This document shows positions 4,238-27,384 of a stretch of 64,000 bases of DNA, in pieces. A program made the translations under genes and the position numbers. The DNA lies in assembly GCA_010909165.1 (NCBI GenBank), contig MU008151.1:992001-1056000 (forward strand). The letters are read 5' to 3'. The notes under the pieces are model-generated. The model was not told the origin of the DNA. It saw only the letters and a list, made by a program, of their open reading frames with translations, and did no database searches. Origin of the DNA: Anthoceros angustus. Lineage: Eukaryota; Plantae; Anthocerotophyta. Positions within the stretch are counted from its first letter, which is position 1. Each line of letters begins with the position of its first letter.

Positions 4238-6480
4238 ATGGCGGAAGAGCATGAGGCGGAGGATTGGCGCGCGCTGCCGGTTAAGCTGCAGCAGCTGCTG
4301 AAAGATCTGGGCCGGAATGCCGTGTCCCAACTACCCTTCCAGCTGCATATTGAAGAAGAGGATGGCGGCTACTTCAGTGGGCGAATCTCTAGGAAAATCC
4401 GTGGTGATGAGGGAAGGCACTGGCGAGTGCGCAAGCGGGTGTTGACAGCCATTTCCAACTGCCGCAGTCTCGAGCACATAACCATTTGGGGCTGGTGGGA
4501 CATCGGCTTGGATCGGGAGGATGAAGTGTCGGTTCTGTTGGGGGGCCTGGCGTCCAACCCTTGCCTGCACCTACTGGATCTGTGTGGCTGTGAAGGTTTT
4601 GGAAGGCAGGCGGCTTGCGAGGCTCTGGGCCAGCTTGTTGCATCCAGTCGCAGCTTACGAAGGCTTTCAGCACCGTTTGTTGGGCTTGATGCCGCCGGAC
4701 TGGGTGCCCTGGCCAAAGGCTTCAACAAGGATTCTGTCCTGGAGGAGTTGATCTTACAAGGGAACGAGGTGGGAGGTGCTGAAGGGGCACAGCACCTGGC
4801 CCGCATTCTGGCCACGGCTCCCCGTCTCAAGGATCTGTCACTGGAAGGCATCGGCATGGATGTGGCGGGAGCCCAGTGTATTGCAAATGCTCTTCCGCTC
4901 TGTGCCACGCTCCGGTTTCTGACGTTGGAAGATGGCGAGGCATTGCGGGGTCCCATTCCCGGCGGCCTCGGGCCCATGGGCACTGTGCTCAAACTTGCTT
5001 TCACCCGCGCGGATGAGGATGAGAATGCCTCCATCTCTGGCGTCACAGACCTTACATTGCTTATCTCGAAGGATGGGGAGGCAGGCCTGGCAGACGCCCT
5101 GGCCGGAATGCTGCGCACCAACGATCGTATCGAGAAGCTTGACACCACTCCATATGCTCTCATCCACGGCCTGGACGGGTTACGCTACAACTCCTCCATA
5201 TCTGAACTTCGTCTCTTGGGCTCCGGGACGCCGACGGATGTGTGGATGCGCCTTGTCCACTTGCTCCCGGAATGCAAAGCACTGCGTGGCCTGGCATTGA
5301 TGTTTCTCCAGGGCCACGCCTCGTTCAAGAAAGAGTTGCTGAGATCCTTGGAGGGCAACGCATCTCTGAAAAAGCTCGACATTTCTATCTGGGACGACCT
5401 GGATGATGACATGTTTAGGGACTTGATGAACTGTATTCAAGTCAACAAGACGTTACGGGAGATCAACATCAGGACAACATGGGAAGCGGAAGGAAAGGAC
5501 GCAATCATCAATGCAGCCTTGGCACGCAATGCCACTCAAGAGGCTTACTGGCCTTTGCTCGTGGGCAGGCAAGGGCCTGTGATGCCCAAGGCTGGGCGCC
5601 TCTTCCTGTGCGGTGCCCCTTTGGCAGGGAAGACCACTCTCCGCACGACCTTGATTCGCGCATGGAGACGATACACAGCCGCATCACTCAAGTCCTGGCT
5701 CCGCCAAGTTCCAGCTCGACTGAAGGGAAAAATATTTCGGCTTGGCGACGGATGGCTTCCGTCACCGGTGCCAGAACGGAAGGCATAGAAATCGAGGTGT
5801 TGCGCAACGACCGTAATATGCAAGTTACCATGTGGGATCTGGCTGGACAAGCTCACTACCGAGCTCTGCAAGACTACCTTTTTCCAACCTTCAACCAAGC
5901 ATGTGTCTTCCTGTTTGCGTTCAGCCCATTTGATGATGGGAAACCTCCCCAACTGGATCGGAAACCTCCCCAAGTGCATCCGTGTAATGTCCTGCAGGAC
6001 AGGTTCAGAAGGAGCTTGGCGTACTGGCTTAGGTTCATCAACTCCAATTGTCGCAACGTGGGCTCTACTTTGCCTCAAATATTTGTGGTGGCAACTCATG
6101 TGGATCAGCTGGAGGCTTCTGATGCTCTAGCATTACCGGATCTCCTTCAACCCGTTCTGACAGAGTTGGCCACCGAGTTTGAACAGGTTGTTCACGTGGA
6201 AACAAAAACACTCTTCTCCATGGACGCTCGATCTGCCAAGAGTGTGAAGCCCTTGCTGGACGCACTCATGGAATCGTTTCGAGCTCTATTTGCAATCAAA
6301 CTGTTTCGGGTACCGAGGTATGCAACCGATTGAGTGCTGATTTGACTGCCTGGGTATCCCAACATCCAGCTCAACCAATGGTGAGGAAACAGCAACTTCA
6401 AACTTTGTTCCAAAACGAGCTGAAGAGACTCCACGAAGGTGGGGTTCAAGATGAGGGGGAACGATTGGGAGCCATTCTTG
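4238..6480 (+). pseudogene. TRN1-like: TORNADO1-like Roco gene, copy 1 (LRR-ROC plus start of COR; truncated by rearrangement)
   Basis: ORF 4163-5788 from MAEEHEAEDW (ATG 4238) has RNI-like LRRs (LEELILQGNEVG, LKDLSLEGIG) and P-loop CGAPLAGKTT (~5609-5640). Next frame: RTEGIEI, WDLAGQ (5833-5850), VVATHVD. Homology to copies 2 and 3 stops at GCCATTCTTG (6480). Confidence 0.88.
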
Positions 6481-6930
6481 CTGGGAAAGGATGTCGTCAC
6501 TGGAATGGCGTCTGAGGCCCCTTGCCCCTCTATGACACTAGACAACGCGGAAAATCGCTCACGGCCATCTCCGATGTCCAACTAACTGGAGATATTGCTT
6601 CACCTTCTTCGAAGGTGAGGAAGGAAGGTGTGTTTCCATCCTTCCTATCCAGGGTGATTTGGTTGTGGAGAGCGTCAGCGGAAAGCGTGGCTTTGCAAAA
6701 AAAACCGTGTGAGCAACAGCAGCACCAACTTGCTCAATAGATTGCCGAACCCCACTGTGTAGAAACCATTAACCTGGTCGACACCACTGTCCCTTGACAC
6801 TTCAGCCACGTGTGCCATTGTGCAGCTGAAGGATTTTCTCACCTGGTCGACACATCCATGGCCTTCTGGAAAGGTGCAGGATTACCCTGATTCTGGTTGC
6901 AACATTTGCAGCCTATAATATAAACTCATC
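6481..6930. repeat. Multi-copy spacer module (copies or parts at ~16040-16400, 20686-21400, 21894-22440)
   Basis: AGAGCGTCAGCGGAAAGCGTGGCTTTTGC-A(n)-CCG..AGCAACAGCAGCACCAACTTGCTCAA is seen at ~6670, 16090, 20877 and 21895, and partially at 21295, with shared flanks. Confidence 0.85.
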
Positions 6931-7610
6931 ACCATTCTCGGTACAGTCATGAACCATTGATGCCAAGGACGTCCATATGCCCTCTTCAGAGGATTGATGG
7001 CAAGGACGTCCATATGCCCTCCAGAGAATGTTCATATGCAACAACAATAACAACAACTTTATGTATGTCCACTGGAAATCTATTGGAAAGAGAAAACAAT
7101 ACTGATACCCTGCTATTCACTTGTGGAGAAACACCATGGGTTATATCCGCAATATCATTGCACTTGGAACCCTTCCCCATACGCTGACTTTGGTGCGCGT
7201 GTTGTTCCCTTTCACAGGCTGCCAGACCCTGATGAGCTTAGATTCATGAAAGATCATGTTATCGAAAATTAAGTAAAAGGGTTTCTAGGCTGGATTCAGT
7301 TTCCATGGACACCAACCCAACCCAACCCAGCCCATCATTCATCACAGGGACCGTGCACGGGAGCCGTTTCCCGTTCCGTTCCGGTGTCCTGATCTCGACT
7401 GACCCGGACAAATTCCATTCCCATTTACTTATTTTAGCATGTTTAAGTTTGGGCTGTTTCGCCGTTCATGTGGGAAGTTTCGCTGCGTGGGGCCTGCCTG
7501 CCAGGGCTGAAGGCCGCGGGATGTGGTGTGGCCTGGAGGAGCACAGCACCTCTGGCCCTCATTCCATTCTAGCAGTCCGGGAAGCATAGCACAGCATAGC
7601 AGAGCAGAGC

Positions 7611-10600
7611 ATGGCGGAAGAGCATGAGGCGGAGGATTGGCGCGCGCTGCCGGGTAAGCTGCAGCAGCTGCTGCTAGATCTGGGCCGGAATGCCGTGCGC
7701 GTACTACCCGATCTGGATAATGATGAAGAGTATGGCGGCTACTTCACTGATCGAATCCGTGGTGATGAGGGAAGGCACTGGCGAGTGCGCAAGCGGGTGT
7801 TCACAGCCATTGCCCACTGCAGCAGTCTCGACATCATAACCATTAACCCCAGGTGGGCCATCGGCTTGGATCGGGAGGATGAAGTGTCGGTTCTGTTGGG
7901 GGGCCTGGCGTCCAACCCTTCCCTGGAAGTACTGCTTCTGATCGGCTGTAAAGGTTTTGGAAGGCAGGCGGCTTGCGAGGCTCTGGGCCAGCTTGTCGCA
8001 TCCAGTCGCAGCTTACTAGAACTTTCAGCATGGACTATTGGGCTTGATGCCGCGGGACTGGGTGCCCTGGCCAAAGGCTTCAACAAGGATTCTGTCCTGG
8101 AGTACCTGCACTTAGACGGGAACGAGGTGGGAGGTGCTGAAGGGCACAGCACCTGGCCCGCATTCTGGCCACGGCTCCCGTCTGAAGAACTGTCACTGAG
8201 GACATCGGCATGGATGTGGCGGGAGCCCAGTGTATTGCAAATGCTCTTCCGCTCTGTGCCACGCTCCGGTATCTGGCGTTGGGTGATGGCGTTGCATTGC
8301 GGGGTCCCATTCCCGGCGGCCTCGGGCCCATGGGCACTGTGCTCAAACTTGCTTTCACCCGCGCGGATGAGGATGAGAATGCCTCCATCTCTGGCGTCAC
8401 ATTCCTTTCTTTGCGCATCTCGAAGGATGGGGAGGCAGGCCTGGCAGACGCCCTGGCCGGAATGCTGCGCACCAACGATCGTATCGAGAGCTTCACCACT
8501 CCATATGCTCTCATCCACGGCCTGGACGGGTTACGCCGCAACTCCACCATATCTCATCTTCATTTCTTTAATTTTCCATTCGAACGGCGATCAGATGCGC
8601 CAGATGCGACGGCTGTGTGGATGCGCCTTGTCCAGTTGCTCCCGGACTGCAAAGCACTGCGTGTCCTGGACTTGGCATTGCTCCAGGGCCACGCCTCGTT
8701 CAAGAAAGAGTTGCTGAGATCCTTGGAGGGCACATCTCTGAAAGAGCTCAACATTTCTGGCTGGGACGCCCTGGATCATGACATGTTTAGAGACTTGATG
8801 AACTGTATTCAAGTCAACAAGACGTTACGGAAGATCAACATCGGGGGGACAACATGGGAAGCGGAAGGAAAGGACGCAATCATCAATGCAGCCTTGGCAG
8901 GCAATGCCACTCAAGAGGCTTACTGGCCTTTGCTCGTGGGCAAGCAAGGGCCTGTGAGGCCCAAGGCTGGGCGCCTCTTCCTGTGCGGTGCCCTTTGGCA
9001 GGGAAGACCACTCTCCGCACCACCATGATTCGCGCATGGAGACGACACAGCCGCATCACCGAGTTCCAGCTCAGCCAAGTTCTAGCTCGACTGAAGGGAA
9101 AAATATTTCGTGCTTGGCGACGGATGGCTTCCGTCACCGGTACCAGAACGGAAGGCATAGAAATCGAGGTGTTGCGCAACGACCATGATATGCAAGTTAC
9201 CATGTGGGATCTGGCTGGACAAGCTCACTACCGAGCTCTGCAAGACTACCTTTTCCGACCTTCAACCAAGCATGTATCTTCCTGTTTGCGTTCAGCCCAT
9301 TTGATGATCGGAAACCTCCCAACTGCATCCGTCTAATGTCCTGCAGGACAGGTTCAGAAGGAGCTTGGCGTACTGGCTTAGGTTCATCAACTCCAATTGT
9401 CGCAACGTGGGCTCTACTTTGCCTCAAATATTTGTGGTGGCAACTCATGTGGATAAGATGAAGCGTTCTGATGCTGAAGCATTACCCAATCTCCTTCAAC
9501 CCGTTCTGACAGAGTTGGCCACCGAGTTTGAACAGGTTGTTCACGTGGAAACAAAACACTCTTCTCCATGGACGCTCGATCTGCCAAGAGTGTGAAGCCC
9601 TTGCTGGACGCACTCATGGAATCGTTTCGAGCTCTATTTGCAACTAAACTGTTTTGGGTACCCGAGGTATGCAACCGATTGAGTGCTGATTTGACTGCCT
9701 GGGTATCCCAACATCCAGCTCAACCAATGGTGAGGAAACAGCAACTTCAAACTTTGTTCCAAAACGAGCTGAAGAGTCTCCACGAAGGTGGGGTTCAAGA
9801 TGAGGGGAACGATTGGGAGCCATTCTTGCCTATTTGCATGATGTGGGTAGTATCATCTGTTTTCAAGATACAGATGTTGTGGTGATAAATCCACACTGGA
9901 TGAGTCACAATTTTTAGGGCGACTCATTCACCTTCTAACCACAGCATGTCTCCGTCTACTAGTAGTTTGTCGTATTCCTCAGATGGGTTTGTTGCTCAAA
10001 GTCTGCTTCATTCCACCTTGGATGAGATTCTCAGAGGCACACAAGCGGAGGGGATTGAAAGTCAACATCTGGTATCATTGATGACCACTCTCAACTTATG
10101 CTATGAAGAGGATGGGACTCGACGTGTCGGATTCTTTGTTCCCTTCACCATGGCCGCCGGTAATGGTGACGCTGATCCTGGGAGACGACAGTTGAACTGG
10201 GAAACTGCTGATACAGCAAGCAATTACATCTACCTCGGAAGGAGGTTACAGTGCCTTGACAAGACGAAGACGTTTCTTGGTCCAGGCTTTTTCCTAGATT
10301 CCAAGTACGATAACTACCAACATGTCTTTGTGTCGATGGTGTGTGTCTTCAACCTGTTTACTGACATTGTGGAGGTTTGCGTATTGTAGGTCTGCCTTCG
10401 AAAGGATTTGTTCGGATTCCATGGCTTGCAACCTGAGCAGTATCGTATTGAACGCAACCTCATCAAGTTTTGGTGTGATGGTATGGATGTGTTTTGGAAA
10501 GCAGTGGGGATATCGGAGAGGACACCGGGACATCGGTGACCATATCGATATTCTGGTGAGGTCATCCAAGAGCAAAGATGAAACTATCGAGTTTCTCAAG

Positions 10601-11893
10601 GAGCATGTGATTGCAAAGTTGAAATCTTTTGTGCTTCCCTGAAGGCAGTCCGGGAGTCGAGCTTGTGGAAGGAATTATCAGGACCGAGTGTGTCGAAAAC
10701 CTCACACTCTGTATCTACCGGCATAATCAGTCAGTGCTAACGCAGGATTTGCTGAAGCGTGTTTTTCCAGACCAACATGATTGTACAGGGGAGATTTTCT
10801 CCTCGTGGGATCTGGCCGACTTCAAATGGTGGTGGCCAGAATGTCCTGAAGCCTTTTTGAGGAATGCCTTTGAGCGAGCTAAAGAGCTCTTAAGTGCTGG
10901 TGAACTCTTGGATGTCTTGCAAAGGCGACGAACAGGTCTCCGTCAAACCATATCCAACATAGATGCAGCTGTAGAGGAAGTCCTGCCTACAGAGAAAGGG
11001 GTGCTCGCACAACAAGACGCACCAGTTCAAACGTCTCGGTCTGCCAGCGTCCGACGTGCTAAATCCCTCCTGGAACAACTCACTCGGAGATGGGGAGCAA
11101 CTGCAAACCATCATTCAAGGGATAAGAGCTTTGGAGCACAACGTGAAAATGGTGGAGACAGAGGTGAAAGCAGTGGGAGTCAAAGTGGATAGAATTGGCG
11201 AGACTTTGCAACTTATCCAACATGAGATGAGCGCTATCAGGGCTGAGCAGGAAGCTACTCAACAATTTTGCTTTCTAAGATGGATGAGATTATGAATTTC
11301 TCTGCAAAATTAGAAAGCAGTCAGATACCCAGACGTCCCTACATCACCACTGCAGACGTGGGTGTAGTACAGAGGTTGATTGCAGGGGTGCGTGTGGGCA
11401 AAGCGGCTAAGCTGCACTTCATGTGCGAAAATATCTTTGGGAATCACATCGTGGAGGGCCAAACTGGATTCGACTTGACATTGGAGGATGCGAAGTGGAA
11501 GTGGATCAGGCCCCTAGCAATCAGAGGTATCAAGGTTTTGGTTTTCCTAGTGAAAGCTGGCCTACATGTGGCTACCGGCATTGGGAATGCGGTTCCCGAC
11601 CCTTCACCAGCTTGGATGGAGCGCTGTATCTCACTGCGGCCTCTCTGGACGCAGACCTGTCCAAGGTAGATCTCAACCTGACAGGTCCATCGGCGGACCA
11701 GGACATTTCCGTGAAGGAGGCATGGATTACCCTGAGGGATCTGGTCAAGCCGTTGGTAAAGGATCACATCGGCGAGATATTCCAACTGCATAGGTGCAAT
11801 TTCGGAAAAGGCCTGAGGAGGACGAGGAGTGGCATGGGTGTGCCCAACGTGTATGCAGAGGGAATTGACAGACGTGTTTATGAGAAACTCTGA
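7611..11893 (+). CDS. TRN1-like: TORNADO1-like Roco gene, copy 2 (LRR-ROC-COR-C-terminal; full length, read through apparent frameshifts)
   Basis: Overlapping ORFs join into: MAEEHEAEDW, ~12 LRRs, P-loop at ~8980-9010, WDLAGQ (~9205-9222), VATHVD, COR (LVSLMTTLNLCYE, YLGRRLQCLD, IDILVRS, G..GVELVEGII), a coiled-coil, and IPRRPYIT...KLHFMCE...HIVEGQTG. The last motif resembles the TORNADO1 C-terminus (from memory). Frameshifts fall mostly in homopolymers. The stop position is approximate. Confidence 0.85.
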
Positions 11894-12329
11894 TGGGAGC
11901 TACTCAAACGACGTGTGTTGCAGCATCACCCCGGGATTTTGGTACATGACTGGAGGAGCGATCTGCACCACGTGATTGGGTAGTGGTATAAGGATGTGTA
12001 GCCCAATCCTGCTTTGTTTCACGTCAGTCTTTGCTGATGGCCACCTCTGAATTCATCTTTTGAGTGGTTCAAGATTGTGACTCTTGAACACGTTCCAGAA
12101 TTCATGAACAACAGCAGGCCCCTGGTTGGTGAAGGAGGATGCTCCGGTCTGAGCATGCATGAATGGCCAGGAATGACATCCTGCCCTGCTCCATGAGTAA
12201 TGGCTAATTCAAACTTCATCTGTGCTTCAGTATCTTCTAACAACTGGCGAGCCGGGGACAAGCAAGAAGCCTGGCTGCAAGAGCTTGACTGATCAGAGCA
12301 GTCCCACTCAGTTCCCCACGAAATGGACC

Positions 12330-12707
12330 TGTAGGCACCAGGCCATGGGTTGTGAAGGCACTGCGCTGCATATTTGTTGTCGGTTCATGAATATTCTTTA
12401 CATCCGAGGGAATCACTCTTCTGAAGAGGCTGCCTACCAATTTCTGCTGGGTGCATCTCAGCTGGGTATTCTGTGGGGTGGGGACTCCGTTATCTATGGC
12501 TACAGCACCAATGCACTGTGTACGCATCGACTTGCTATGGGATTGGTGTGTGCAATAGAATGTGTGTGCTGTTTGGTGACTTCTTCTCGAAGTTTGGCAT
12601 TTTGGAAACAGCAGAACCACATTCGTATCGAGCCTTCCATGTATTTCCAAATGGGCATCTGGGGCGCTCTGTTTTGGGGATTTTGGGTCGCCCAACTCAT
12701 GTACTAA
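12330..12707 (+). pseudogene. Degenerate PLS-class PPR / E-domain fragment
   Basis: Frames give FLLGASQLGILWGG, CVLFGDFFSKFGILETA and QMGIWGALF. These resemble the PPR consensus LL.ACSHAGL..EG, CLVDL..RAG.LE.A and .IWGALL. Confidence 0.45.
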
Positions 12708-12993
12708 TGCGAACGGGATTGTCATTCTGCCGTCTCTTGAAGGATTCGATTACTGCAAGAAGACGTCACTTCACATCTTATTCACCTGGTTGCCATCCTG
12801 GTCCTAATGCAGGGATGAAATGGTAGGCAAAGCGCCCTGGATTTTGGCTAGCCTCGGACTGTGTCCCTCGATGTGACCATTTTCCTACTGATAACGTGCC
12901 TGTTACTCGTCCAAAGGCAGGTGCCAGATGAGGGCTCCTCTGTGGTGGGTTTCCAAGTCAGGTCATTTCGGCACTGTGCCCTTCCCTGCAGCA

Positions 12994-14272
12994 GGAGCTA
13001 GGATGGCGGCAGGTGCACGCCGGATTTGTGTTGAAGGAAGGACGATTTCTCTGCCTAAGTCTGTTTCCTTCAGGAGTCCTGCGGAGGCCCCAGGAAACTG
13101 TCGTGACCTGGCGGGACCCTGTCTACTCCAGTTTACAGGGTCCAGCCCTGAAACTGATCCCTGATGGATCCTCTCCTGGCTGGGTAGGATAGATTTTTGG
13201 TTTGTAAATGTTCTAGAGATGTAGTGAGCTTCCTCTTGACTGCAGAATTAGGACCAGCAGCTAAAATACGTTCGAGCTGCTGCACGGTACTGTACGAAGA
13301 ACCTGCTTATCATGAAAGCGATTATGAAGAAAGTGATATGGAAATATTAACGACAAACATCTTTGGCTTGTTTGCCAGAACTGACGTGGCCGTGGCTTGT
13401 GGAGGTGCTGACGACCTGCATTCAATCAGGAGGCCAAGTCGTCAGCAAGAGGGTTGGGAGGTTCGACCGCATTCTATCAGCGATTGTCTCCAGGTTTTCG
13501 AACAGAAGGATGTCAGGAAGGCATGGTTGTACCCAATTCCGTGACATTTGTGTGCTCTTGCATGCATGTGAAAATGTGGCAGCCTTGTGTGTAGGAAGAC
13601 AGCAACACGCACAAAACCGTTCATCCTCTTCAAGACGGGGTAGACGGCCCAAATCATTCCGGGCCAGGCAGTCCAGCAGCCGCCGCCGCCGAGCTGGCAG
13701 CGCGCGCCAGTCCTTGGCCTCGTCCGCCATGCTACACTGTGCTTCTCAGCGATGTAAAAGGTGGTCTCTGTGGCGAACGCGTGGGAAACGTCCACGCCCC
13801 GAACGGGATAAGACTGGCTTCGCACCGGACTTCCTCCATCCATTCTCTGTTCTGTTCCTGGAATCCCTGCAGGCAAAGGGATGGACCAAGTCAGGAAAAG
13901 GAGAATCGTCTCCTCGACTCAAGGCAGCAAATTAGGTGCTAGGTGATGCCGTGTCCTCAACCTAATGACTTAAGTACATACTTTACCCTAAGAAGCTTGC
14001 TTTCCACTTCGGAGAAGCTGGGGACTCAAGGAGCATCTTTCGCTTCGCGTCTACGCAGAGGCAGACGTCATCATCCTCAACCCGCCTGTTGCAGCCAGGT
14101 GAGGAGCAAGCCGATGCGGTGCAGTTGCTCACAAGACGTGCACACCAAGGTAGCATATGCTAACCCGAATCGGAACCTTGACAACCTGGCTGCAACCACC
14201 TGCAACACCCTAATCCACACTGGCATATGCCTCACCATCTCATGCAGAATCCACCATTCCCTGCAGCTTGCA
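12994..14272. repeat. ~1.3-kb segmental duplication, direct copy at ~28824-30155
   Basis: Colinear near-identity from GCTAGGATGGCGGCAGGTGCAC through CACCATTCC(C)TGCAGCTTGCA. Confidence 0.9.
13422..13730 (-). pseudogene. N-terminal fragment of a divergent Roco paralogue (second copy at ~29400-29640)
   Basis: MADEAKDWRALPARRRRLLDCLARNDLGRLPRLEEDE aligns by eye with MAEEHEAEDWRALPVKLQQLLKDLGRNAVSQLP...EEED of copies 1-3. Confidence 0.7.
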
Positions 14273-14274
14273 CG

Positions 14275-14480
14275 TCGGTGATCGTGTTGATATTTTGGTG
14301 AGGTCTCGCAAGGGTCATCGAGTAAGACCAAACAATCGCGCTTCACCCTCGGCACTCGCGCTTTGTGCCCTTCCTGCGTGCTCGTCTTTCCTGCTCGTAC
14401 AACTTGCAATTGCTAGCAAGCTTCAAGGTGTAGGACATAGTGGCGTGCTTTTGAGACGTGTGCTTGAACATGCTGAAGAA
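14275..14480 (+). pseudogene. COR-region fragment of a divergent Roco paralogue
   Basis: GDRVDILVRSRKG...ASKLQGVGHSGVLLRRV versus GDHIDILVRSSKS...CAS...G.PGVELVEGII in copies 2 and 3. Confidence 0.5.
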
Positions 14481-15452
14481 GGGCAGCTGTACGTAGCTCA
14501 AGTTTGCAGGCTGCAGCCCTGAATCTGATCCTGATGCATCGTCTAGACTTCTGCCTGGATAGGATAGATTTGGTTGGTGAATGTTCCAGAGATGTGAGAG
14601 CTTCCTCTTGACTGCAGCATTAGGGTTATCAGCCGTACTTGTCAAGAGATGCAGGGTTCGAGCTGCCGCACATCGAGAAAGCGATCTCGAAAGAAATGAT
14701 GCAACACCTTTCTCGAAAGCAATGATGACAAACACCTTTGGCTTGTTTGCCAGAGATGTACATAACTGTTTCCACTGATGGGTCTATCACTGGACACAGT
14801 TTTGCGGCAGACAAGCCAAAGGTGTTTTGTTTATCATTAATGCTTGTCGAGGCACCCACAACTGTCAAGGGCTAGGACGTCGAGGAGACCATGTCTTGAG
14901 AAGCAATCTCGTCAGCAAGAGAGCTGGGAAGGTTCGACCCTGCTTTCTGTGAGTGACTGTCTCGTCGTTTTCTCCCAGTCATGGGAGAAGTATGTTTCAG
15001 AGATGCCGAGAAAGGCACAAAATTTATCCTCGCTTTGGTGGAAGCCATCGTTGAGGCCTCTCTAGTTGGCAGATTGTAGGACAGCGGCTCCAAGCTGATG
15101 TGTTTTGTAGCTGGCAGTTTGACTCAGCGTCTAGTACAGTCCTCCGTTCGGCCAACTGAGCTAAAGTCGGAGCCTGCGGACGTGCGAGTCCTTTGCAGTT
15201 ATTCAAGTCGCATTCAAACATCCTGCAACATTGCAACACCGACAATGTTGCAGTAATGGATTCACGAATTCTTGCCAAACGTCTCATATCCAGGCAAAGA
15301 TAGTCCCATGTGCTAGAAATCCTGAAAAAGAACGGGTAGTAGAAAGTCGGTTGCTGGATCAGCAGCGTCCCAATTTTGCTGGATTATGCAGCCCGTCGGA
15401 GAGATTGGCCATGGACATGGCTAAAGTCATCCAGTCAAGTCTTCTACCGCTC

Positions 15453-15906: not shown

Positions 15907-16000
15907 ACCCTTTCCTGTGCGGTGCTCCTTCGGCGGAAGACCGCTCTCCGCACCACCTTGATCCGCGCATGGCGAGATTCGTGCTTCGAGGTAGGGCAAG
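15907..16000 (+). pseudogene. Isolated ROC P-loop fragment
   Basis: TTCCTGTGCGGTGCTCCTTCGGCGGAAGACCGCTCTCCGCACCACCTTGATCCGCGCATGG = FLCGAP..(G)KTALRTTLIRAWR, matching the P-loop of copies 1-3. Confidence 0.8.
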
Positions 16001-16749
16001 TTGGGCTGAAGGAGAAAATGTCGCAGGCACGGGGAAGGTGAGGAAGGGAAGGCGTGTTTCTATCCTTTCTATCCAGGGTGATTTGGTTGTGGAGAGCGTC
16101 AGCGGAAAGCGTGGCTTTTGCCAAAAGAAAAAACCGCGAGAGTAACAGCAGCACCAACTTGCTCAACAGATTGCCGAACCCGACTGTGTAGGAACCATGA
16201 ACCTTGCCAAACATCACCAGTTCAACAGTGATGAAGGCCACGGGGAACTACATCGAGTGCAGCAAATGCATAAAATGGTCAAGCTTGAAGGGGCTGCTAC
16301 ACAGACAAGAGCGTCTCCCTTGACACTTCAGCCATGTGTGCTGTTGTGCAGCTGAAGGATTTTCTCACCTGGTCGACACATCCATGGCCTTCTGTAGCCG
16401 TCCCAAAACCGCTCCTGGAAGCGCGAAAGTGCAGGATTATCCGCAGAGATTGACTTGACTATCGTCTGCAAATTGCAAAGAAACGAGAGGTGCTCACAAG
16501 CCATCGCAAGGTTGATTACTTAGCTTCACCGAACCTCAACCGCAAACTCATGTTCAGCAAGTGTGCCCGCGCAAGGAGTCGCGCCAAGATGCCACGGTCT
16601 GCTGGATCGAGCACGGCAGCTCGAGGCTCAGCTCCGAGGACAACAACAGACGGAGCTCAATGCAGGGTTCCCTGCGAGTCTGGCCTGGGTCAGTACAGCC
16701 TGATTCTGGTTACAACATTTGCAGCCTAATTGTCACGGCGTACAAACTT

Positions 16750-18213: not shown

Positions 18214-21200
18214 CATATTGCTGATACTGGGAATGCTAACACAATGTTGATACCGGGACTGCTACATGAAATGGGAAATGCCATATAAAATGATGAATGA
18301 CACGATATAGGTGAAGGAGTAAGTTATATCGTATTATGAAGGGGATCAAGTTATATATTATTGTGACAGTGAAATTCGTAATCTCGTATTCGACTTCTGA
18401 CGATAAGAAATGCTAACTGTTTAAAAGAATGTTTTGAGCTCTTCAAGCGAAAGCTGTAGGTTAGTTATCATTAAGAGAAGTAGACCTAATTGTTGGAAGC
18501 ATTTTTTGAACATTGATGTTAAGTTAGCTGAATGTCTGAAGACATGAGATTGGCAGTTCATAAACGACGCGGTTAGAGGCATAGTGAAGGTGTGTAGGAT
18601 ACTCTCTGCCCACATACACGATGACAATTTTCAATTGTATTACATCTTGAAAAGTAGAATGGTAATAAAAATACCTTAGTTTCTTTGATAATAGTTTTGG
18701 TAATAACCTTGGTAATAGTTTGCATGGGCCATTTGTTAAGATATTGGATAGAGATAGATTTGAATAGAAACTGTAGATATAAGTTGGGATATGAGCTATT
18801 GGCAATTGGAGTGTGAATAATTAGCGATTGGAATGTGTGGAGTATTTGTTTGCCACTTGATAATTGTCGACAGTCTATACCCCAAATGTCAATAGTTTAT
18901 ATCCAAAGCTAAATCAATAGTTCACATCCAAATCTATGTCTAATCGATATCCTAGCAAGTCACCTCTACAAACAATTGCCAAGCTTTTGGCAAAAGTCAA
19001 AGGGAAGTTGGGTATTTTTCATCCCATTCTGGTTTTCAAGATGTAATAAAGCTTAAAATTGGTTATTGTCGCACATGGGCAGAGAATATCTTATATATTT
19101 CATGTAGAATATCTTATATATTTCTATATGTATCTCTTCTAACCCTTGTCAATGGATCAATCTATCGATGTCTTCAAACATTCAATCATCTTAAAAATGC
19201 CCCAAACAATTAGGTCTATTTCCCTTATCAATACTTAGTTTTTAGTTTTTGTTTCAAGAGATCAAAAACTTCTCTCATGTTGTCAGAAGATCAAATTCGA
19301 GATCCCGAATTTCCCCTTCACAATAGAATATAACTTGTCCCTTGGTTATGTCACTTCATTCTTGTCCCATTCCACCATGTCAAACAAGATTATTGAGATC
19401 CTTGGCAGTTTTGCTTATCCTATGTCTGATATTGAAAAGAAAAGCAGGAAAGGATTCAAGTACTGGAAGCGACCATAAATCCAAATGGAGCAATTACTAC
19501 CACAAGTGTGAAGGCAAAGTTGATAATGCCTAAGTTGGTAGCATGATGATTTTGTTCGCAACTTTACATTCTCAAATGCAACATATGGGAAGCAAAATGA
19601 GCAAAAAGAGGGCTGAGGATCGTAATCTATAGTGTAACATGACTCCATTGGCCAGGAGTTGGCCGCCAAAATCTTGCACAGGGGGGTGAGGTGAGTCAGG
19701 CGGCACGTGTTCACCACAACTTGCTCAATAAGTGTTTCAAGAAGTGGCAAATTCACGTCACCCACCTCATCCACGGACACGACTCGCTTGGATGCACGCA
19801 GACTCGACCCTCCCATCCTCGTGTATGGTGGGTGGGTATTGGCCCTTCAAGCCTGCAGCTGCCACGACCAAAGCTCCAGTGCACACAGACGTGGTGTACT
19901 AGCATGGTGTGCTGGGATGTCTTGTGGGCCTGCAACATGTACGCAATCCAAGACTTACCTCATGGACGAGCTGAGAGGACGCCAACAAGATTGCTACAGG
20001 AAGGTGTGAGCAGCTTACTCCTCGCCTCTTGGACCCAGAGGCTGAGGCTGTAGAGGCTGCTGTGATCGGCATTTTGGTGTCTGACCTCTTTAGCACCTAC
20101 CCAAAGCACTTGCATACCCTCCAGCCTTCACACTGCAACGGAAGGCCCGACAATGTCCGGGCTAGTGAAGCCCGGATGCAGAGCCATGCTTATCGTTGCC
20201 ACCTTTCCGGGAAATCCGTTGCGCAACCGCAACTTGGCACTGGAAGAAATCGGACTCGAGGAACCCAGGATGTATAGCCTGAAGTGCAGCATCCTTATCT
20301 AGCATCATAAGCATGCGTGCTCAAGCCTGCCAGGTGAACGAGTGGAAATGCACATGGTCAAGATACAGTGAACACATTCAGACTTCAGAGTTGACATAAT
20401 CGTCAACCCACTCCAACTCACCAACCCTTGGCCTCTTCCGAGTACATGCATACATGCACGTGTCCAAGCCTTGATCACGCCCGATCCCCACATGAACATG
20501 AGCCATCTGCAAACCGGTGCACACGGTGGGCATCTCTTACAATGATCTCTCGCTTCTCCAGGCGTGACATTATCTTGGTGCTCCCATGGCAGTCATTGCA
20601 GTCTTTTCGGTCCTCTGCTTGAATGATTTCTAGATCTTTGGCACACTGTCAGGATGTGTGTGTTCCATCTTCCCGACCGGCCAAAGCTGGGAAAGGATGT
20701 CATCACTGGATTGGCGTCTGAGGCCCCTTGCCTTCACGTCTCTATGACACTAGACAACGCGGAAAATCGCTCACGGCCATCTCCGATATCCAACTAACTG
20801 GAGATTTTGCTTTCTTCGAAGGTGAGGAAGGGAAGGTGTGTTTCTATCCTTCCTATCCAGGGTGATTTGGTTGTGGAGAGCGTCAGCGGAAAGCGTGGCT
20901 TTTGCAAAAAAAAAAAACCGTGAGAGCAACAGCAGCACCAACTTGCTCAATAGATTGCCGAACCCGACTGTGTAGAAACCATTAACCTGGTCAAACACCA
21001 CCGGTTCAACAGTGATGAAGGCCACAAGGAACTACATTGAATGCAGCAAATGCATAAAATTGTCAAGCTTGAAGGGGCTGCAGCCTACACAGACAAGAGC
21101 ATCTCCCTTGATACTTCAGCCTCCCTTGACTGGAATGGCGTCTGAGGCCTCTTGCCCCTCTATGACACTAGACAACGCGGAAAATCGCTCACGGCCATCT

Positions 21201-21577
21201 CCGATATCCAACTAACTGGAGATTTTGCTTTCTTCGAAGGTGAGGAAGGGAAGGTGTGTTTCTATCCTTCCTATCCAGGGTGATTTGGTTGTGGAGAGCG
21301 TCAGCAAATGCATAAAATTGTCAAGCTCGAAGGGGCTGCAGCCTACACAGACAAGTGCATCTCCCTTGACACTTCAGCCTCCCTTGACACTTTAGCCACG
21401 TGCGCTTAGATCGGTACTTAGATGGGGTGCCTGAAGGGAGTGGATGCCCTTGGTGCAAGTAGCTTAGGCACACCAAGGTACAAGTTGTTAAGTACCAAGT
21501 CCCATGACGGAAATCCAGTCTTTAGTGGAGTTAAATACAATTCTTCTTCTTCTTCCTGTGGGTCCTCTTGCTCAGGG

Positions 21578-21893
21578 GACAGAGCAGAGCCGCGGACTCG
21601 CCTTCCTGCGCCACGAAGAACTGTTGCTGTAGCGGGATTGCAGCTCCACGAAGAATTGGCGAGGCAGGAGGGAGTTCACAGCAGGTCCCACGTTGAAGTC
21701 GATGATGTGCGGCGACGTCAGGTCCTGGATCACCACGATGGTGCGCTCGTCTGGACTCCACAGGCTCCGCAGCGCCTGCCCCGATGTGGCCGGGGTAGGC
21801 TCGGTTGTCGTCACCACCCGCTGTGCTGCTCCAGCTGCTTGCAGGCAGTCTGTTAAATAATACCCTGCGAGCATCGTCCAGACTGTCACACTT
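21578..21893 (-). pseudogene. Second copy of the TPM-domain exon fragment
   Basis: Near-identical to 3045-3365 (SGQALRSLWSPDERTIVVIQDLTSPHIIDFNVGPAVNSLLPRQFFVELQSRY). The splice donor is mutated. Confidence 0.7.
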
Positions 21894-23123
21894 CCGAAAG
21901 CGTGGCTTTTGCAAAAAAAAAAACCGTGAGAGCAACAGCAGCACCAACTTGCTCAATAGATTGCCGAACCCCACTGTGTAGAAACCATTAACCTGGTCAA
22001 ATATAGCAAGAGCATCTCCCTTGACACTTCAGCCACGTGTGCCATTGTGCAGCTGAAGGATTTTCTCACCTGGTCGACACATCCATGGCCTTCTGGAAAG
22101 GTGCAGGATTTCCCGCAGAGATTAACTTGACTATCGTCTGCAAATGCAGCGAGACGAGAGGTGCTCACACGAGCCATCAGAAGGTTGATTACTTAGCTTC
22201 ACCCAACCTCAACTACAAACTCAGCATAAAATACAATGTTCAGCAAGTGTGCCCGCGCAAGAAGTCGCGCCAAGATGCCACGGTCTGCTGGATCGAGCAG
22301 GGCAGCTCGAGGCTCAGCTCGCCATGGGCTGGGGGCCGGTCACCGTAGGCGGGCGCGAGTCTGTCCTGGGTCAGTACAGCCTGATTCTGGTTGCAACATT
22401 TGCAGCCTATAATATAAACTCATCACCATTCTCGGGTACAGTTATGAACCATTGATGCCAAGGACGTCCATATGCCCTCTTCAGAGGATTGATGGCAAGG
22501 ACGTCCATATGCCCTCTCCAGAGGATGTTCATATGCAACAACAACAACAACTTTATGTATGTCCACTGGAAATCTATTGGAAAGAGAAAACAGTACTGAT
22601 ACCCTGCTATTCACTTCTGGAGAAACACCATGGGTTATATCCGCAATCATCATTGCACTTGGAACCCTTCCCCATACGGTGTGGTTTGGGAGAGGAAGTT
22701 GTTCCCTTTCACAGGCTGCCAGACCCTGATGAGCTTAGATTCATGAAAGATCATGTTATCGAAAATTATAAGTAAAAGGGTTTCTAGACTGGATTCAGTT
22801 TCCATGGACACCCAACCCAACCCAACCCAACCCAACCCAACCCAGCCCAGCCCAGCCCATCATTCATCACAGGGACCGTGCACGGGAGCCGTTCCGTTCC
22901 GTTCCGTTCCGGTGTCCCGATCTCGACTGACCCGGACAAATTCCAATTCTTCATTTATTTTAGCATGTTTAAGTTTGGGCTGTTTCGCCGTTCATGTGGG
23001 AAGTTTCGCTGCGTGGGGCCTGCCTGCCAGGGCTGAAGGCCGCGGGATGTGGTGTGGCCTGGAGGAGCTCAGCACCTGCCTGGCCCTCATTCCATTCTAG
23101 CACTTCGCATAGCAGAGCAGAGC

Positions 23124-26100
23124 ATGGCGGAAGAGCATGAGGCGGAGGATTGGCGCGCGCTGCCGGTTCTGCAGCAGCTGCTGGATCTGGGCCGGAATGC
23201 CGTGTGCTGCTGACCTGTCCGGAGCAATGAAGAGAGTATGGCGGCTACTGAGTGGGCAAATCCGTGGTGATGAGGAAGGCACTGGCGAGTGCGCAAGCGG
23301 TGTTGACAGCCATTGCCAACTGCCGCAGTCTCGTCACCATTGACCAGGTGGGCCATCGGCTTGGATCGGGAGGATGAAGTGTCGGTTCTGTTGGGGGCCT
23401 GGCGTCCAACCCTTCCTGGAATACTGGTCTGTATGGCTGTGAAGGTTTTGGAAGGCAGGCGGCTTGCGAGGCTCTGGGCCAGCTTGTTGCATCCAGTCGC
23501 AGCTTACGAACACTTTCAGCATGTTGGGCTTGATGCCGCGGACTGGGTGCCCTGGCCAAAGGCTTCAACAAGGATTCTGTCCTGGAAGACTTGGACTTAA
23601 GGGAACGAGGTGGGAGGTGCTGAAGGGCACAGCACCTGGCCCGCATTCTGGCCACGGCTCCCCGTCTCAAGGATCTGTCACTGAAAGACATCGGCATGGA
23701 TGTGGCGGGAGCCCAGTGTATTGCAAATGCTCTTCCGCTCTGTGCCACGCTCCGGTATCTGGCGTTGGATGATGGCGTTGCATTGCGGGGTCCCATTCCC
23801 GGCGGCCTCGGGCCCATGGGCACTGTGCTCAAACTTGCTTTCACCCGCGCGGATGAGGATGAGAATGCCTCCATCTCTGGCGTCACATCTTTATTTGGAT
23901 ATCTCGAAGGATGGGGAGGCAGGCCTGGCAGACGCCCTGGCCGGAATGCTGCGCACCAACGATCGTATCGAGGAGCTTGTCACCACTCCATATGCTCTCA
24001 TCCACGGCCTGGACGGGTTACGCCAACTCCACCATATCTGAACTTCGTCTCGGGACCCATCAGCTGCGACGGATGTGTGGATGCGCCTTGTCCAGTTGCT
24101 CCCGGAATGCAAAGCACTGCGTGTCCTGGACTTGGGCTCTCAAGGGCCACGCCTCGTTCAAGAAAGAGTTGCTGAGATCCTTGGAGGGCAACGCATCTCT
24201 GAAAAAGCTCGACATTTATTGCTGGGACGACCTGGATGATGACATGTTTAGGGACTTGATGAACTGTATTCAAGTCAACAAGACGTTACGGGAGATCGAC
24301 ATCGGGGGGACAACATGGAAAGCGGAAGGAAAGGACGCAATCATCAATGCAGCCTTGGCACGCAATGCCACTCAAGAGGCTTACTGGCCTTTGCTCGTGG
24401 GCAGTCAAGGGCCTGTGAGGCCCAAGGCTGGGCGCCTCTTCCTGTGCGGTGCCCCTTTCGCAGGGAAGACCACTCTCCGCACCACCATGATTCGGGCGTG
24501 GAAACAACAGATAGCCGCATCAAAGTTCCAGCTCGGCCAAGTTCTAGCTCGACTGAAGGGAAAAATATTTCTGCTTGGCGACGGATGGCTTCCGTCACCG
24601 GTACCAGAACGGAAGGCATAGAAATCGAGGTGTTGCGCAACGACCATGATATGCAAGTTACCATGTGGGATCTGGCTGGACAAGCTCACTACCGAGCTCT
24701 GCAAGACTACCTTTTTCCGACCTTCAACCAAGCATGTATCTTCCTGTTTGCGTTCAGCCCATTTGATGATGGGAAACCTCCCAACTGCATCCGTCTAATG
24801 TCCTGCAGGACAGGTTCAGAAGGAGCTTGGCGTACTGGCTTAGGTTCATCAACTCCAATTGTCGCAACGTGGGCTCTACTTTGCCTCAAATATTTGTGGT
24901 GGCAACTCATGTGGATAAGATGAAGCGTTCTGATGCTGAAACATTACCGAATCTCCTTCAACCCGTTCTGACACAGTTGGCCACCGAGTTTGAACAGGTT
25001 GTTCACGTGGAAACAAAAACACTCTTCTCCATGGACGCTCGATCTGCCAACAGTGTGAGGCCCTTGCTGGGCGCACTCATGGAATCGTTTGGAACTCTAT
25101 TTGAAACTAAACTGTTTTGGGTACCCGAGGTATGCAACCGATTGAGTGCTGATTTGACTGCCTGGGTATCCCAACATCCAGCTCAACCGATGGTGAGGAA
25201 ACAGCAACTTCAAACTTTGTTCCAAAACGAGCTACAGAGTCTCCACAAAGGTGGGGTTCAAGATGAGGGGAACGATTGGGAGCCATTCTTGCCTATTTGC
25301 ATGATGTGGGTAGTATCATCTGTTTTCAAGATACAGATGTTGTGGTGATAAATCCACACTGGATCAGTCACAATTTTTAGGGCGACTCATTCACCTTCTA
25401 ACCAGCATGTCTCCGTCTAGAGGTTTGTCGCATTCCTCAGATGGATTTGTTGCTCAAAGTCTGCTTCATTCCACCTTGGATGAGATTCTCAGAGGCACAC
25501 AAACGGAGGGGATTGAAAGGCAACATCTGGTATCGTTGATGACCACTCTCAACTTATGCTATGAAGAGGATGGGACTCGACGTGTCGGATTCTTTGTTCC
25601 CTTCACCATGGCCGCCGGTAATCGTGACGCTCTTCCTGGGACACGAAAGTTGAACTGGGAAACTGCTGATACAGGAAGCAATTACAACTACCTCGGAAGG
25701 AGGTTACAGTGCCTTGACAAGACGAAGACGTTTCTTGGTCCAGGCTTTTTTCCTAGATTCCAAGTACGATAACTACCAACATGTCTTTGTTTTGATGGTG
25801 TGTGTCTTCAACCTGTTTACTGACATTGTGGAGGTTTGCGTATTGCAGGTCTGCCTTCGAAAGGATTTGTTAACCGGATTCCATGGCATGCAACCTCATC
25901 AATATCGTATTGAACGCAACCTCATCAACTTTTGTGCGATGGTATGGTTGTGTTTTGGAAAGCAGTGGGGATATCGGAGAGGACACCGGAGACATCGGTG
26001 ACCATATTGATATTCTGGTGAGGTCATCCAAGAGCAAAGATGAAACTATCGAGTTTCTCAAGGAACATGTGGTTGCAAAGCTTGAAATCTTTTGTGCTTC

Positions 26101-27384
26101 CCTGAAGGCAGTCCGGGAGTCGAGCTTGTGGAAGGAATTATCAGGACCGAGTGTGTCGAAAACCTCACACTCTGTATCTACCGGCATAACCAGTCAGTGC
26201 TAACGCAGGATTTGCTCAAGTGTGTTTTTGCAGTCCAACAAGACTGTACAGGGGAGATTTTCTCCTCAATGGATCTGGCCGACTTCCGCTGGTCGTGGCC
26301 ACCATGTCCTGAAGCCTCTTTGGAGAGTGCCTTTGAGGGAGCTGATGAGCTCTTAAGTACTGGTGAAGTCTTGGATGTCTTGCAAAGGCGACGAACAGGT
26401 CTCCGTCAAACCATATCCAGCATAGATGCAGCTGTAGAGGAAGTCCTGCCTACAGAGGAAGGGGTGCTCGCACAACAAGACGCACCACTTCAAACGTCTC
26501 GGTTTGCCTACCTCCGACGTACTATATCCCTCCCTGGAACTAGTCACTCGGAGATGGGGAGCAACTGTTGCAAACCTTCAATCATGGGATGAGAGATTTG
26601 AAGCACGACGTGAAAATGGTGGATACACGGTTGAAAATGGTGGAGACAGAGGTGAAAGCAGTGGAGTCAAAGTGGATAGAGTTGGCGAGACTTTGCAACG
26701 TGAGATAAGCGATATGAAGACCTGGCAGGAAGATACTCTACAACTCTTGCTTTCGAAGATGGATGAGATTATGAATTTCTCTGCAGAATTAGAAAGCAGT
26801 CAGATACCCAGACGTCCCTACATCACCACTGCAGACGTGGGTCTGGCACAGAGATTGATTGCAGGGGTGCGTGTGGCAAAGCGGCTAAGCTGCACTTCAT
26901 GTGCGAAAACATCTTTGGGAATCACATCGTGCAGGGCCAAACTGGATTTGACTTGACATTGGAGGATGCGAAGTGGAGGTGGATCAGGCCCTTAGCAATC
27001 AACGGTGCAAAGCTATTGCTCTTCCTGGCCAAGGCTGGCCTACACGTGGCTGCCGGCATTGGGGTGCGGTTCCCGACCCTGCTACCAGCTTGGATGGAGC
27101 GGTTTCTGTGGCTGCGGCCTTGGGAATCAGCCCTGTCCCATTTAAATCTGGACCTAACAGGACCAGCTGCGAGCCAGAACACTCCCGTGCAAGAGGCATG
27201 GATTGCTCTGAAGAATCTGTTGCAACCGTTGCTGAGGGATCAAATGGCTGACAAATTCCAACTGCACAAGGTGCAATATCGGAAACGGCAGGATGGAGGA
27301 CGAGGAGTGGCATGGGTTTGCGAACGGTGTATGCGGAGGGAATTACAAGACAAGTCTATCAGCCGCTCTGACGGGAGCAACTAG
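23124..27384 (+). CDS. TRN1-like: TORNADO1-like Roco gene, copy 3 (full length, read through apparent frameshifts)
   Basis: ATG at 23124 (ATGGCGGAAGAGCATGAG), LRRs, P-loop CGAPFAGKTT (~24445-24475), WDLAGQ (~24666-24683), VATHVD, COR, then MCENIFGNHIVQGQTG...VAWVCERC...stop at 27384. Colinear with copy 2. Confidence 0.85.

Follow-up and report, generated by a model that had tools for sequence, protein, structure and literature searches.

A tandem array of broken TORNADO1-type LRR-Roc-COR copies in Anthoceros angustus and its bearing on a candidate receptor family of bryophytes

Can a land plant build an NLR-style receptor cluster on a Roco GTPase switch rather than on NB-ARC? The question is raised by a 64-kb stretch of Anthoceros angustus DNA (the window, in what follows), in which a first-pass annotation recognized three LRR-Roc-COR genes and described them as a candidate immune-receptor locus. 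The locus itself probably comprises three dead copies, arrayed in tandem or segmentally, of a single gene from a large, bryophyte-expanded family paralogous to TORNADO1 (TRN1); the first copy is a 5' half-copy, and the other two are full-length pseudogenes. What these copies may still tell about the family is considered below, together with the alternatives.

Layout and architecture of the array

The window holds three paralogous LRR-Roc-COR copies, all on the forward strand: copy A at 4238-6481, copy B at 7611-11906, and copy C at 23124-27384. Their assignment was confirmed by tblastn, in which full-length homologues align collinearly to each copy without intron-sized gaps. The intact homologue P0156, a protein of 1399 aa encoded by a single 4.2 kb ORF, is collinear with A, B, and C, which are intron-free and run through many frame changes. 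The description of the copies as near-identical was too strong, as self-BLAST places DNA identity among them at 90-92% and, depending on the segment, B and C diverge by 0.5% to 24%.

Duplication extended beyond the genes. A 5' flank module that belongs to the duplicated unit precedes each copy (3626-3894 on the forward strand, with counterparts at 7089-7360 and 22583-22824; 89-90% identity by self-BLAST), and a 3' flank co-duplicated with the gene (12988-14272, strand not assigned) is paired with 28832-30155 at 90-94% identity. Dispersed repeat modules at 6480-6887 (forward strand) adjoin the breakpoint of copy A ahead of B, and the same modules recur at 20686-22114, upstream of C, and at 16034-16333 (self-BLAST identity, 91-95%); a search of the A breakpoint junction for inverted repeats was negative. 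Fragments of further paralogues, which had been noted earlier, were recovered at three places. A P-loop fragment at 15912-15975 (forward strand) matches B 8978-9042 at 88% over 66 nt by blastn and at 70% over 20 aa by tblastn, and two N-terminal fragments on the reverse strand lie inside the duplicated flanks, one at 13620-13733 within 12988-14272 (69% identity over 120 nt) and one at 29568-29636 within 28832-30155 (blastn, 77% over 70 nt). Tandem clustering, birth-and-death debris, and gene conversion were all borne out. The claimed proximity of transposable elements did not hold up: only dispersed and tandem repeats were seen, and outside the copies none of the ten longest ORFs contained a Pfam domain. 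Rfam and tRNA scans of the window were both empty. An exact look-up of the ORF of copy A returned no record, and a word-indexed protein search with that ORF, or with its last LRR plus the P-loop, gave nothing useful, its reach being narrowed by a length filter and by LRR words.

The LRR domain of copy A (4469-5497, forward strand) comprises 12 repeats of the ribonuclease-inhibitor (RI)/NLRP type; the AF2 model of the A ORF (pLDDT 84) contains 12 strand-helix units, and the top PDB matches are NLRP9 and ribonuclease inhibitor. Pfam Roc matches on the window ORFs, at E values of 6e-5 to 7e-4, fall below the gathering score, and motifs G1 to G4 are present. The window's own pieces gave no Pfam COR match; they align collinearly to COR-A of P0156 (residues 739-839) and to COR-A/COR-B of P0160. 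Neither NB-ARC nor NACHT was detected in the window pieces or their homologues, for which Pfam gives Roc and COR only. Copies B and C continue into the C-terminal domain region, where they align to P0156 residues 990-1393. This domain of approximately 460 residues had no match among solved structures, and the model of P0156 residues 940-1399 matched TRN1 of Arabidopsis alone (Q9FJ57, residues 954-1378; Foldseek E 2e-15). These models indicate an architecture that is truly of the TORNADO1 type, with predicted N-terminal RI-type LRRs, Roc, COR, and a TRN1-like C-terminal domain.

Orthology is another matter. The label "TORNADO1-like" is sound for the architecture, including the C-terminal 460 residues, but the copies are not TRN1 orthologues. 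In the tree the window copies group with P0156, P0158, and a Calypogeia protein, far from the TRN1-like P0211, a distant outgroup, and from P0212, the TRN1-like protein of Marchantia, which falls with clusters named "protein TORNADO 1" and scores 82 bits on copy B versus 825 for P0156. Judged from sequence, the family of A, B, and C is a separate, expanded paralogue clade, and in Marchantia a single conserved TRN1-like orthologue exists beside the expanded family.

Variation on the LRR strand face and the behavior of the family

The strand face of the LRRs is hypervariable among the three copies. Nucleotide differences occupy 81 of 417 positions in strand windows (19.4%) and 11 of 627 in the scaffold (1.75%; p 1.5e-23), an approximately 11-fold greater density, and when the variable residues are mapped onto the AF2 model of A, they account for 54% of the strand positions versus 3% of the helix positions. 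Far from lying below 1 throughout, dN/dS is about 2 on the LRRs and peaks over the predicted strand face, where the windows give 2.2 (bootstrap, 1.4-4.0); dS is itself raised there (0.12 versus 0.02 in the scaffold), so part of this signal stems from long-standing variation spread by conversion, or from multi-hit codons, and not from recent positive selection. Codons with a single difference are nonsynonymous in 21 cases and synonymous in 2. The LRR scaffold is thus nearly unchanged, and it is the residues on and immediately after each predicted beta-strand that have been exchanged throughout, with amino acid changes in excess. The same periodic strand-face pattern is found in 17 intact Marchantia polymorpha paralogues. 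Divergence between B and C is a mosaic, and incompatible sites are clustered (93 runs versus 117 in shuffles, the observed value being reached by 0 of 2000 shuffles), which indicates that gene-conversion mosaics are present among the copies.

The family is anything but low-copy. At least 33 loci were found in M. polymorpha, many of them clustered on chromosome 8; the family is clustered in liverworts and multi-copy in A. angustus, and in relatives (Riccia) an alpha/beta-hydrolase occupies the C-terminal output position. Plants are described as having one or two ROCO genes, with the largest repertoires in brown algae (PMC11378527); the liverwort sequences, which reveal an expansion running to dozens of clustered genes, point elsewhere. 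Our literature search on Roco, TRN1, or COR with Marchantia, bryophytes, hornworts, or NLRs found no description of an expanded family, and six of the Marchantia locus tags were mentioned in no paper found and were absent from the supplements of one infection study.

Three known systems invite comparison. Arabidopsis TRN1 shares the N-terminal RI-type LRRs, Roc, COR, and long C-terminal domain, but is low-copy and developmental, whereas the present family is multi-copy, clustered, and LRR-hypervariable, with the window copies being pseudogenes. The brown-algal LRR-ROC-COR proteins (Zambounis 2012, cited in Teng 2024, PMC11378527) share the domain order; they form large repertoires (9-47) rich in pseudogenes, their LRRs diversify, and an immune role has been proposed for them but not proven. 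They differ in that each LRR has an exon to itself and diversity comes from exon shuffling and alternative splicing, in place of the intronless genes, strand-face codons, and gene conversion met here; the LRR type and C-terminal domain of A, B, and C are moreover TRN1-like and of a land-plant lineage. Plant NLR clusters likewise show a tandem arrangement, birth-and-death with pseudogenes and fragments, and conversion mosaics; their solvent-exposed xxLxLxx residues are hypervariable and have a dN/dS above 1, and they too expand by lineage and vary in their accessory domains. The copies nevertheless lack NB-ARC, their predicted switch being a Roc GTPase with COR, and their LRRs are of the RI/animal-NLRP type and not the plant-specific type. 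At the sequence level, then, A, B, and C display the behavior of a diversifying receptor family as known from plant NLRs (hypervariable strand face, clustered expansion, pseudogenes, and conversion), and the variation of the LRR binding face mirrors a hallmark of NLR and receptor-like resistance genes. An immune role of the family is plausible.

The family may instead consist of diversified binding proteins with a non-immune role, such as TRN1-like development, self or kin recognition, symbiont accommodation, or mobile-element control, and resemble NLRs in evolutionary mode only. TRN1, the sole studied relative, is indeed developmental (PMC11378527), and brown-algal ROCOs are described as responding to several stresses. 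However, strand-face hypervariability with dN/dS above 1, clustered lineage-specific expansion, frequent pseudogenes, and a swapped alpha/beta-hydrolase output form the combined signature of antagonistic coevolution, and in Marchantia the single TRN1-like orthologue persists beside the family. We therefore regard a purely non-immune role as improbable.

Alternatively, the LRR pattern could owe nothing to selection and reflect relaxed constraint on dead copies, short conversion patches, or alignment artefacts. A, B, and C are pseudogenes, the elevated dS falls in the same strand windows as the differences, the multi-letter gaps of C lie there too, and outside the LRRs the dN/dS between B and C is approximately 0.9. 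Neutral decay, however, should be uniform, and the excess of differences in the strand windows is not; furthermore, the A-B comparison is gap-free over most windows, the single-difference codons are predominantly nonsynonymous, and intact, annotated Marchantia paralogues share the periodicity. With this evidence on the two sides, we consider an explanation without selection to be quite unlikely, and diversification of the strand face in the family to which the copies belonged is the reading carried forward here.

State of the reading frames

If the family behaves as receptors do, are these three copies working members of it? An uninterrupted frame over the whole protein is absent from A, B, and C alike: the expected product is approximately 1400 residues, and the longest ORF in the copies is 541 codons (in A, 4163-5788). 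The GTPase motifs, described as intact in the first-pass annotation, can all be found locally (GAPLAGKT, which fits GxxxxGKT, as well as TEGI, DLAGQ, and ATHVD), but they lie in different frames within every copy, and the P-loop of B is split.

Copy A is a 5' half-copy. From an ATG at 4238 it encodes the N-terminal helices and the 12 LRRs, and its homology to B and C stops at 6481, at about residue 750 of roughly 1400. Its alignment with P0156 by tblastn follows frames 2, 1, and 3 in succession, and the DNA alignment shows two one-letter gaps, at 5739 (also in C) and 6312; the P-loop at 5612 is in frame 2, and TEGI (5776), DLAGQ (5836), and ATHVD (6091) are in frame 1. If both gaps are disregarded, A reads through 748 codons to the break. 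Copy B is full length, with an ATG at 7611 and with LRR, Roc, COR, and TRN1-type C-terminal domains spread over approximately 10 frame changes; its longest open stretch is 368 codons, its P-loop is interrupted at 8990, it has out-of-frame stops (e.g., 11190), and at 9317 it has a 22-letter deletion in common with C. Copy C, also full length (ATG 23124 and TAG 27382) and heavily decayed, has approximately nine frame changes, a stop as early as codon 29, G motifs spread over three frames, and, apart from the shared 22-nt deletion, ten private frame-breaking gaps of at least 2 letters (2, 5, 8, and 25 nt). Both B and C are still broken when every one-letter gap is forgiven, a what-if that serves as a bound only, since deletion and insertion are indistinguishable where only B and C exist.

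Short-read DNA support for the breaks in B comes from one contig, record 6, which spans B 9112-9486 with zero substitutions and one extra letter and reproduces the break inside the Roc domain, including the 22-letter deletion and the sites at 9251 and 9323; as the extra letter is a single one, the frame there stays broken. None of the DNA contigs listed was shown to bridge B 8990 or 9803 with enough flank. Two exact-match short-read contigs are each one letter longer than the assembly, and some one-letter frameshifts (especially the two in A and several of those in B) may hence be assembly errors. In the same sample, RNA contigs that match B at 97-99% identity contain letters missing from B, and none lies in the 5' flank; since they differ from B by 1-1.6% substitutions, they derive from another paralogue. 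Close paralogues of A, B, and C are therefore transcribed.

Might the plant in fact carry unbroken, working genes whose frameshifts are no more than homopolymer deletion errors of the long-read assembly? Almost all of the one-letter gaps are deletions, often within short single-base runs, and the two short-read contigs with an additional letter and the forgiven frame of A agree with this, but it is very unlikely as an account of the locus, because the multi-letter gaps of C and the persistent breaks in B and C lie beyond its reach, record 6 confirms a break that its extra letter cannot mend, A terminates at 6481 regardless of small gaps, the RNA contigs in which the letters missing from B are present belong to a different paralogue, and one-letter gaps over the same 2.3 kb, in identical sequence contexts, number 2 in A as opposed to 9-10 in B and C, a disparity that speaks against a uniform assembly error rate. 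We conclude that the locus is a cluster of pseudogenes, and with all three copies non-intact, it cannot itself be the working receptor locus that had been proposed.

A possible mechanism and its implications

An account of the array and of its intact relatives can be proposed. An unbroken copy would encode, in one exon, a protein of approximately 1400 residues with an N-terminal helical cap, 12 RI/NLRP-type LRRs, Roc, COR, and a TRN1-type C-terminal domain of approximately 460 residues. Duplication of a unit larger than 8 kb, together with unequal exchange, probably produced the array, whose members afterwards swapped tracts by gene conversion and decayed through small deletions. In the Chlorobium Roco protein, LRRK2, and MFHAS1, the G4 motif of the Roc-COR tandem is likewise of the THxD type, and COR-mediated dimerization is coupled to the GTPase cycle; this provides the template for a mechanism here, although A, B, and C differ from bacterial LRR-Roc-COR proteins, human LRRK2, and MFHAS1 in lacking a kinase domain and in their LRR type and C-terminal domain. 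In intact members of the family, we infer that the variable concave LRR face would bind a variable ligand, most plausibly derived from microbes, and that binding could free the Roc-COR switch through a nucleotide-dependent change in dimerization of the kind described for other Roco proteins. Output would be carried by the TRN1-type domain at the C-terminus, making such a protein a functional analogue of an NLR in which a GTPase replaces NB-ARC.

A broader and more tentative proposal, possible but short of probable, is that bryophytes (liverworts and A. angustus) hold a second, undescribed class of intracellular immune receptors. These would be clustered, TORNADO1-paralogous LRR-Roc-COR proteins with swappable outputs (TRN1-type or alpha/beta-hydrolase), and dead copies might act as a store of strand-face variants for conversion into expressed paralogues.

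In sum, the copies themselves are dead, and the value of this locus lies in its record of how the family evolves. If the family is immune, it would represent an independent land-plant route to intracellular recognition, with a GTPase in place of a STAND ATPase, and the proposal would be directly testable in Marchantia, which offers both intact members and genetic tools. An immune role would also give context for the unexplained biochemistry of TRN1.

Arrangement and coding content of the Roco copies

Self-comparison of the window delimited three forward-strand units at 3959–6481 (copy A), 6886–12232 (copy B, including approximately 430 bases upstream), and 22380–27712 (copy C), with pairwise DNA identities of 90–92%, homologous ATGs at 4238, 7611, and 23124, and a short upstream module ahead of each copy (3626–3894, 7089–7360, and 22583–22824, respectively). 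Copies B and C run on into duplicated 3′ flanks (12988–14272 paired with 28832–30155) and thus represent a segmental duplication exceeding 8 kb. Further copies have left small pieces, namely a P-loop piece (15912–15975) and two minus-strand N-terminal pieces (13620–13733 and 29568–29636). The first-pass annotation had described three near-identical TORNADO1-like genes with intact GTPase motifs; the copies are indeed of TORNADO1 type and clustered, with debris around them, but they are neither near-identical nor intact. The longest reading frame in the region is 541 codons, in a window containing no Ns.

The window carries other repeats as well. G-rich minisatellites at 42024–43005 and 45382–45630 (units of 23–25 nt and 19 nt, with strong GC skew) give rise to long spurious minus-strand open reading frames (ORFs). 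No protein domains were found in ORFs near a tandem repeat at 35199–36146 (287-nt unit, 3.2 copies), a 1.3-kb repeat pair 26 kb apart (36376–37724 and 62679–63994; 89.5% identity), or a 1.3-kb tandem duplication at 59821–62474 (95% identity).

The 541-codon ORF of copy A had no match above 37% identity over most of its length among 1.8 billion representative proteins. Its closest named relatives come from liverworts (Marchantia, Riccia, and Calypogeia) and are "COR domain-containing" proteins with lengths of 1300–1650 residues; the best full-length reference is P0156, a 1399-residue homologue encoded on a public contig as a single uninterrupted 4.2-kb ORF. In tblastn comparisons, P0156 and eight other homologues were collinear with all three copies, with repeated frame changes and no intron-sized gaps. 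Against P0156, copy A passes through frames 2, 1, and 3 before homology ends near residue 750, copy B changes frame approximately ten times, and copy C does so approximately nine times, its first 100 residues being unrecognizable. Pfam detected Roc weakly in pieces from the window, and Roc together with COR-A or COR-B in the homologues. The GTPase motifs reported earlier as intact (GAPLAGKT, TEGI, DLAGQ, and ATHVD) are all present but lie in different frames within each copy, and the P-loop of copy B is interrupted by a one-letter gap at 8990.

Frame breaks, transcription, and conversion

Whether these breaks are genuine or assembly errors was addressed with a three-way DNA alignment, counting frame-breaking gaps over the 5′-most 2.3 kb of the coding region. 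Copy A has two one-letter gaps (5739, common to copy C, and 6312) and none longer. Copy B has nine one-letter gaps (seven its own, two common to copy C), one two-letter gap of its own, and a 22-letter deletion common to copy C. Besides this deletion, copy C has ten one-letter gaps (seven its own, three shared) and eight of its own of at least two letters. In the last 2 kb, a further 14 frame-breaking gaps separate copies B and C, two of them two-letter gaps in copy C, bringing its own gaps of at least two letters to ten. When all one-letter gaps were forgiven, a test that cannot polarize gaps in the region held by copies B and C alone, copy A was open over all 748 codons to its breakpoint while copies B and C were still broken.

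Public reads also bear on this question, as the sequence was found in the DNA and RNA runs of one sample. Two short-read DNA contigs, covering 6954–7165 (record 4) and 9112–9486 of copy B (record 6; 376 letters, zero substitutions), are substitution-free and each one letter longer than the assembly; thus some one-letter gaps, especially the two in copy A, may be assembly errors. This hints at single-base deletion errors that would bear on every frameshift call in the genome. A uniform error rate is, however, countered by the gap counts: in matching sequence contexts, one-letter gaps number two in copy A but nine to ten in copies B and C. Record 6 lacks the 22 letters as well as the insertions that RNA shows at 9251 and 9323; since copy B is short by 23 letters over this interval and record 6 adds only one somewhere, the frame between DLAGQ and ATHVD is not restored. 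None of the DNA contigs listed was shown to bridge 8990 or 9803 in copy B. It follows that decay is certain for copy C, that the frame of copy B is disrupted in Roc at the least, and that copy A can be no more than a truncated LRR-Roc fragment.

RNA contigs from the same sample map to coding parts and are absent from the 5′ flank (6960–7559), where DNA depth is high, and thus look like transcripts rather than DNA carryover. The longest diverge from copy B by 1–1.6% substitutions and hold letters that it lacks (ACG at 8732, C at 8990, AC at 9044, C at 9251, G at 9323, and G at 9803), and they therefore derive from a close paralogue that is more intact and lies at another genomic site. Separately, a DNA run labeled as a second organism yielded more than 1300 short contigs at 90–99% identity over 4360–9959, confined to coding parts with none intergenic, suggesting a large family with a highly conserved LRR scaffold in a related species.

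Scored per 200 aligned bases, copies B and C diverge by as little as 0.5% and as much as 24%. The three possible pairings of the copies are supported by 51, 58, and 66 sites, and these sites are clustered (93 runs versus a shuffle mean of 117, with none of 2000 shuffles reaching the observed value), indicating that the copies are gene-conversion mosaics.

Variability of the LRR strand face

Differences within the LRR region are strikingly periodic. Twelve repeats were set by their LxxLxL anchors, and a 12-residue window per anchor (strand) was compared with the remainder of the repeat (scaffold). Between copies A and B, 81 of 417 nucleotides differed in strand windows versus 11 of 627 in scaffold (Fisher p = 1.5e-23), with dN and dS of 0.26 and 0.12 in the former and 0.017 and 0.019 in the latter. 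Codons with two or three changes numbered 26 and 1, respectively, and single-change codons in strand windows were nonsynonymous in 21 cases and synonymous in 2. The A-versus-B dN/dS was 2.2 in strand windows (bootstrap 1.4–4.0) and 2.1 across the whole N-terminal and LRR region (bootstrap 1.4–3.6); corresponding A-versus-C values were 1.8 and 1.7, and B versus C gave approximately 0.9 outside the LRRs. An AlphaFold model of the copy A ORF forms a 12-strand horseshoe (pLDDT 84, pTM 0.79), with NLRP9 and ribonuclease inhibitor as the closest solved structures. On this model, positions that vary among the copies are frequent in strands (54% of residues) and in the five residues past each strand (35%) but rare in helices (3%; p = 4e-16).

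Neutral pseudogene decay cannot give such a strand-focused distribution. The pattern must therefore come from the living family, either predating the death of the copies or having been donated by living members through conversion. The raised dS of the strand windows, which multi-hit codons also inflate, suggests that diversity on the strand face is old and has been maintained, with conversion homogenizing the scaffold. In the LRR region of copy C (23124–24600), gaps of at least two letters (8, 2, 5, 2, 2, 25, and 2 nt) all lie in or at the edge of strand windows and one-letter gaps mostly in conserved scaffold, a placement suggesting that the strand windows were sites of patch replacement or error-prone repair. 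The same periodic variability was observed in 17 intact Marchantia polymorpha paralogues, with mean column entropies of 1.12 (strand windows) and 0.48 (scaffold) and highly variable columns at 38% versus 5% (p = 1e-8).

The wider family and its relation to TORNADO1

A query spanning P0156 from Roc to the C terminus matched 56 proteins, nearly all from liverworts; together with named look-ups, these represent 33 or more distinct M. polymorpha loci, approximately 17 of them on chromosome 8 with neighboring locus tags (e.g., 8g14480 to 8g16163). A rapid maximum-likelihood phylogeny with 62 rows, whose long branches call for caution at deep nodes, placed copies A, B, and C in one clade (support 100) with P0156 as sister (support 98), followed by the homologue P0158 and a Calypogeia protein. 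It also showed a species-level radiation of M. polymorpha genes (approximately 37 rows), with the TORNADO1-like P0211 as a distant outgroup. A further homologue, P0212 (Mp3g18460), groups in the ESM Atlas with clusters named "protein TORNADO 1" and matches copy B at 82 bits, versus 825 for P0156. The family is nonetheless homologous to Arabidopsis TORNADO1 (TRN1, Q9FJ57) over its entire length: a conserved 460-residue C-terminal domain (model pLDDT 74) matches TRN1 residues 954–1378 (E = 2e-15), and its model found no match in the PDB. In the alignment of this domain (P0156 940–1399), C310, E311, and H317 never vary and C444 and C447 hardly do, which hints at a putative metal-binding site; the HLMCE...H and WVCExC motifs also occur in copies B and C.

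Domain content differs among family members in Riccia sorocarpa (P0066, P0004, and P0205): in some, Roc-COR is followed by an alpha/beta-hydrolase or lipase-like domain, and in P0004 the Roc-COR unit occurs twice. Heads of the alpha/beta-hydrolase type are also found in liverwort NLRs, and interchangeable output modules would suit a design that pairs a receptor with an effector.

Plants are described as having one or two ROCO genes and brown algae as having 9–47, more than any organism reported, and for the algal genes an immune role was proposed on the basis of shuffled LRR exons and diversifying selection (Teng 2024, PMC11378527). Within an incomplete literature coverage that offers absence of evidence only, no work linking Roco, TRN1, or COR domains with Marchantia, bryophytes, hornworts, or NLRs was found, and six Marchantia locus tags occurred neither in any paper found nor in an infection study's supplements. 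The earlier proposal of a receptor cluster is partly supported: this locus is a pseudogene cluster, and the family to which it belongs behaves as a diversifying receptor family. Judging from domain order and general knowledge of Roco proteins, the variable LRR face would bind ligand, Roc-COR would act as the switch, and the C-terminal module would provide the output. A diversifying, receptor-like Roco family of this kind appears to be undescribed in land plants.
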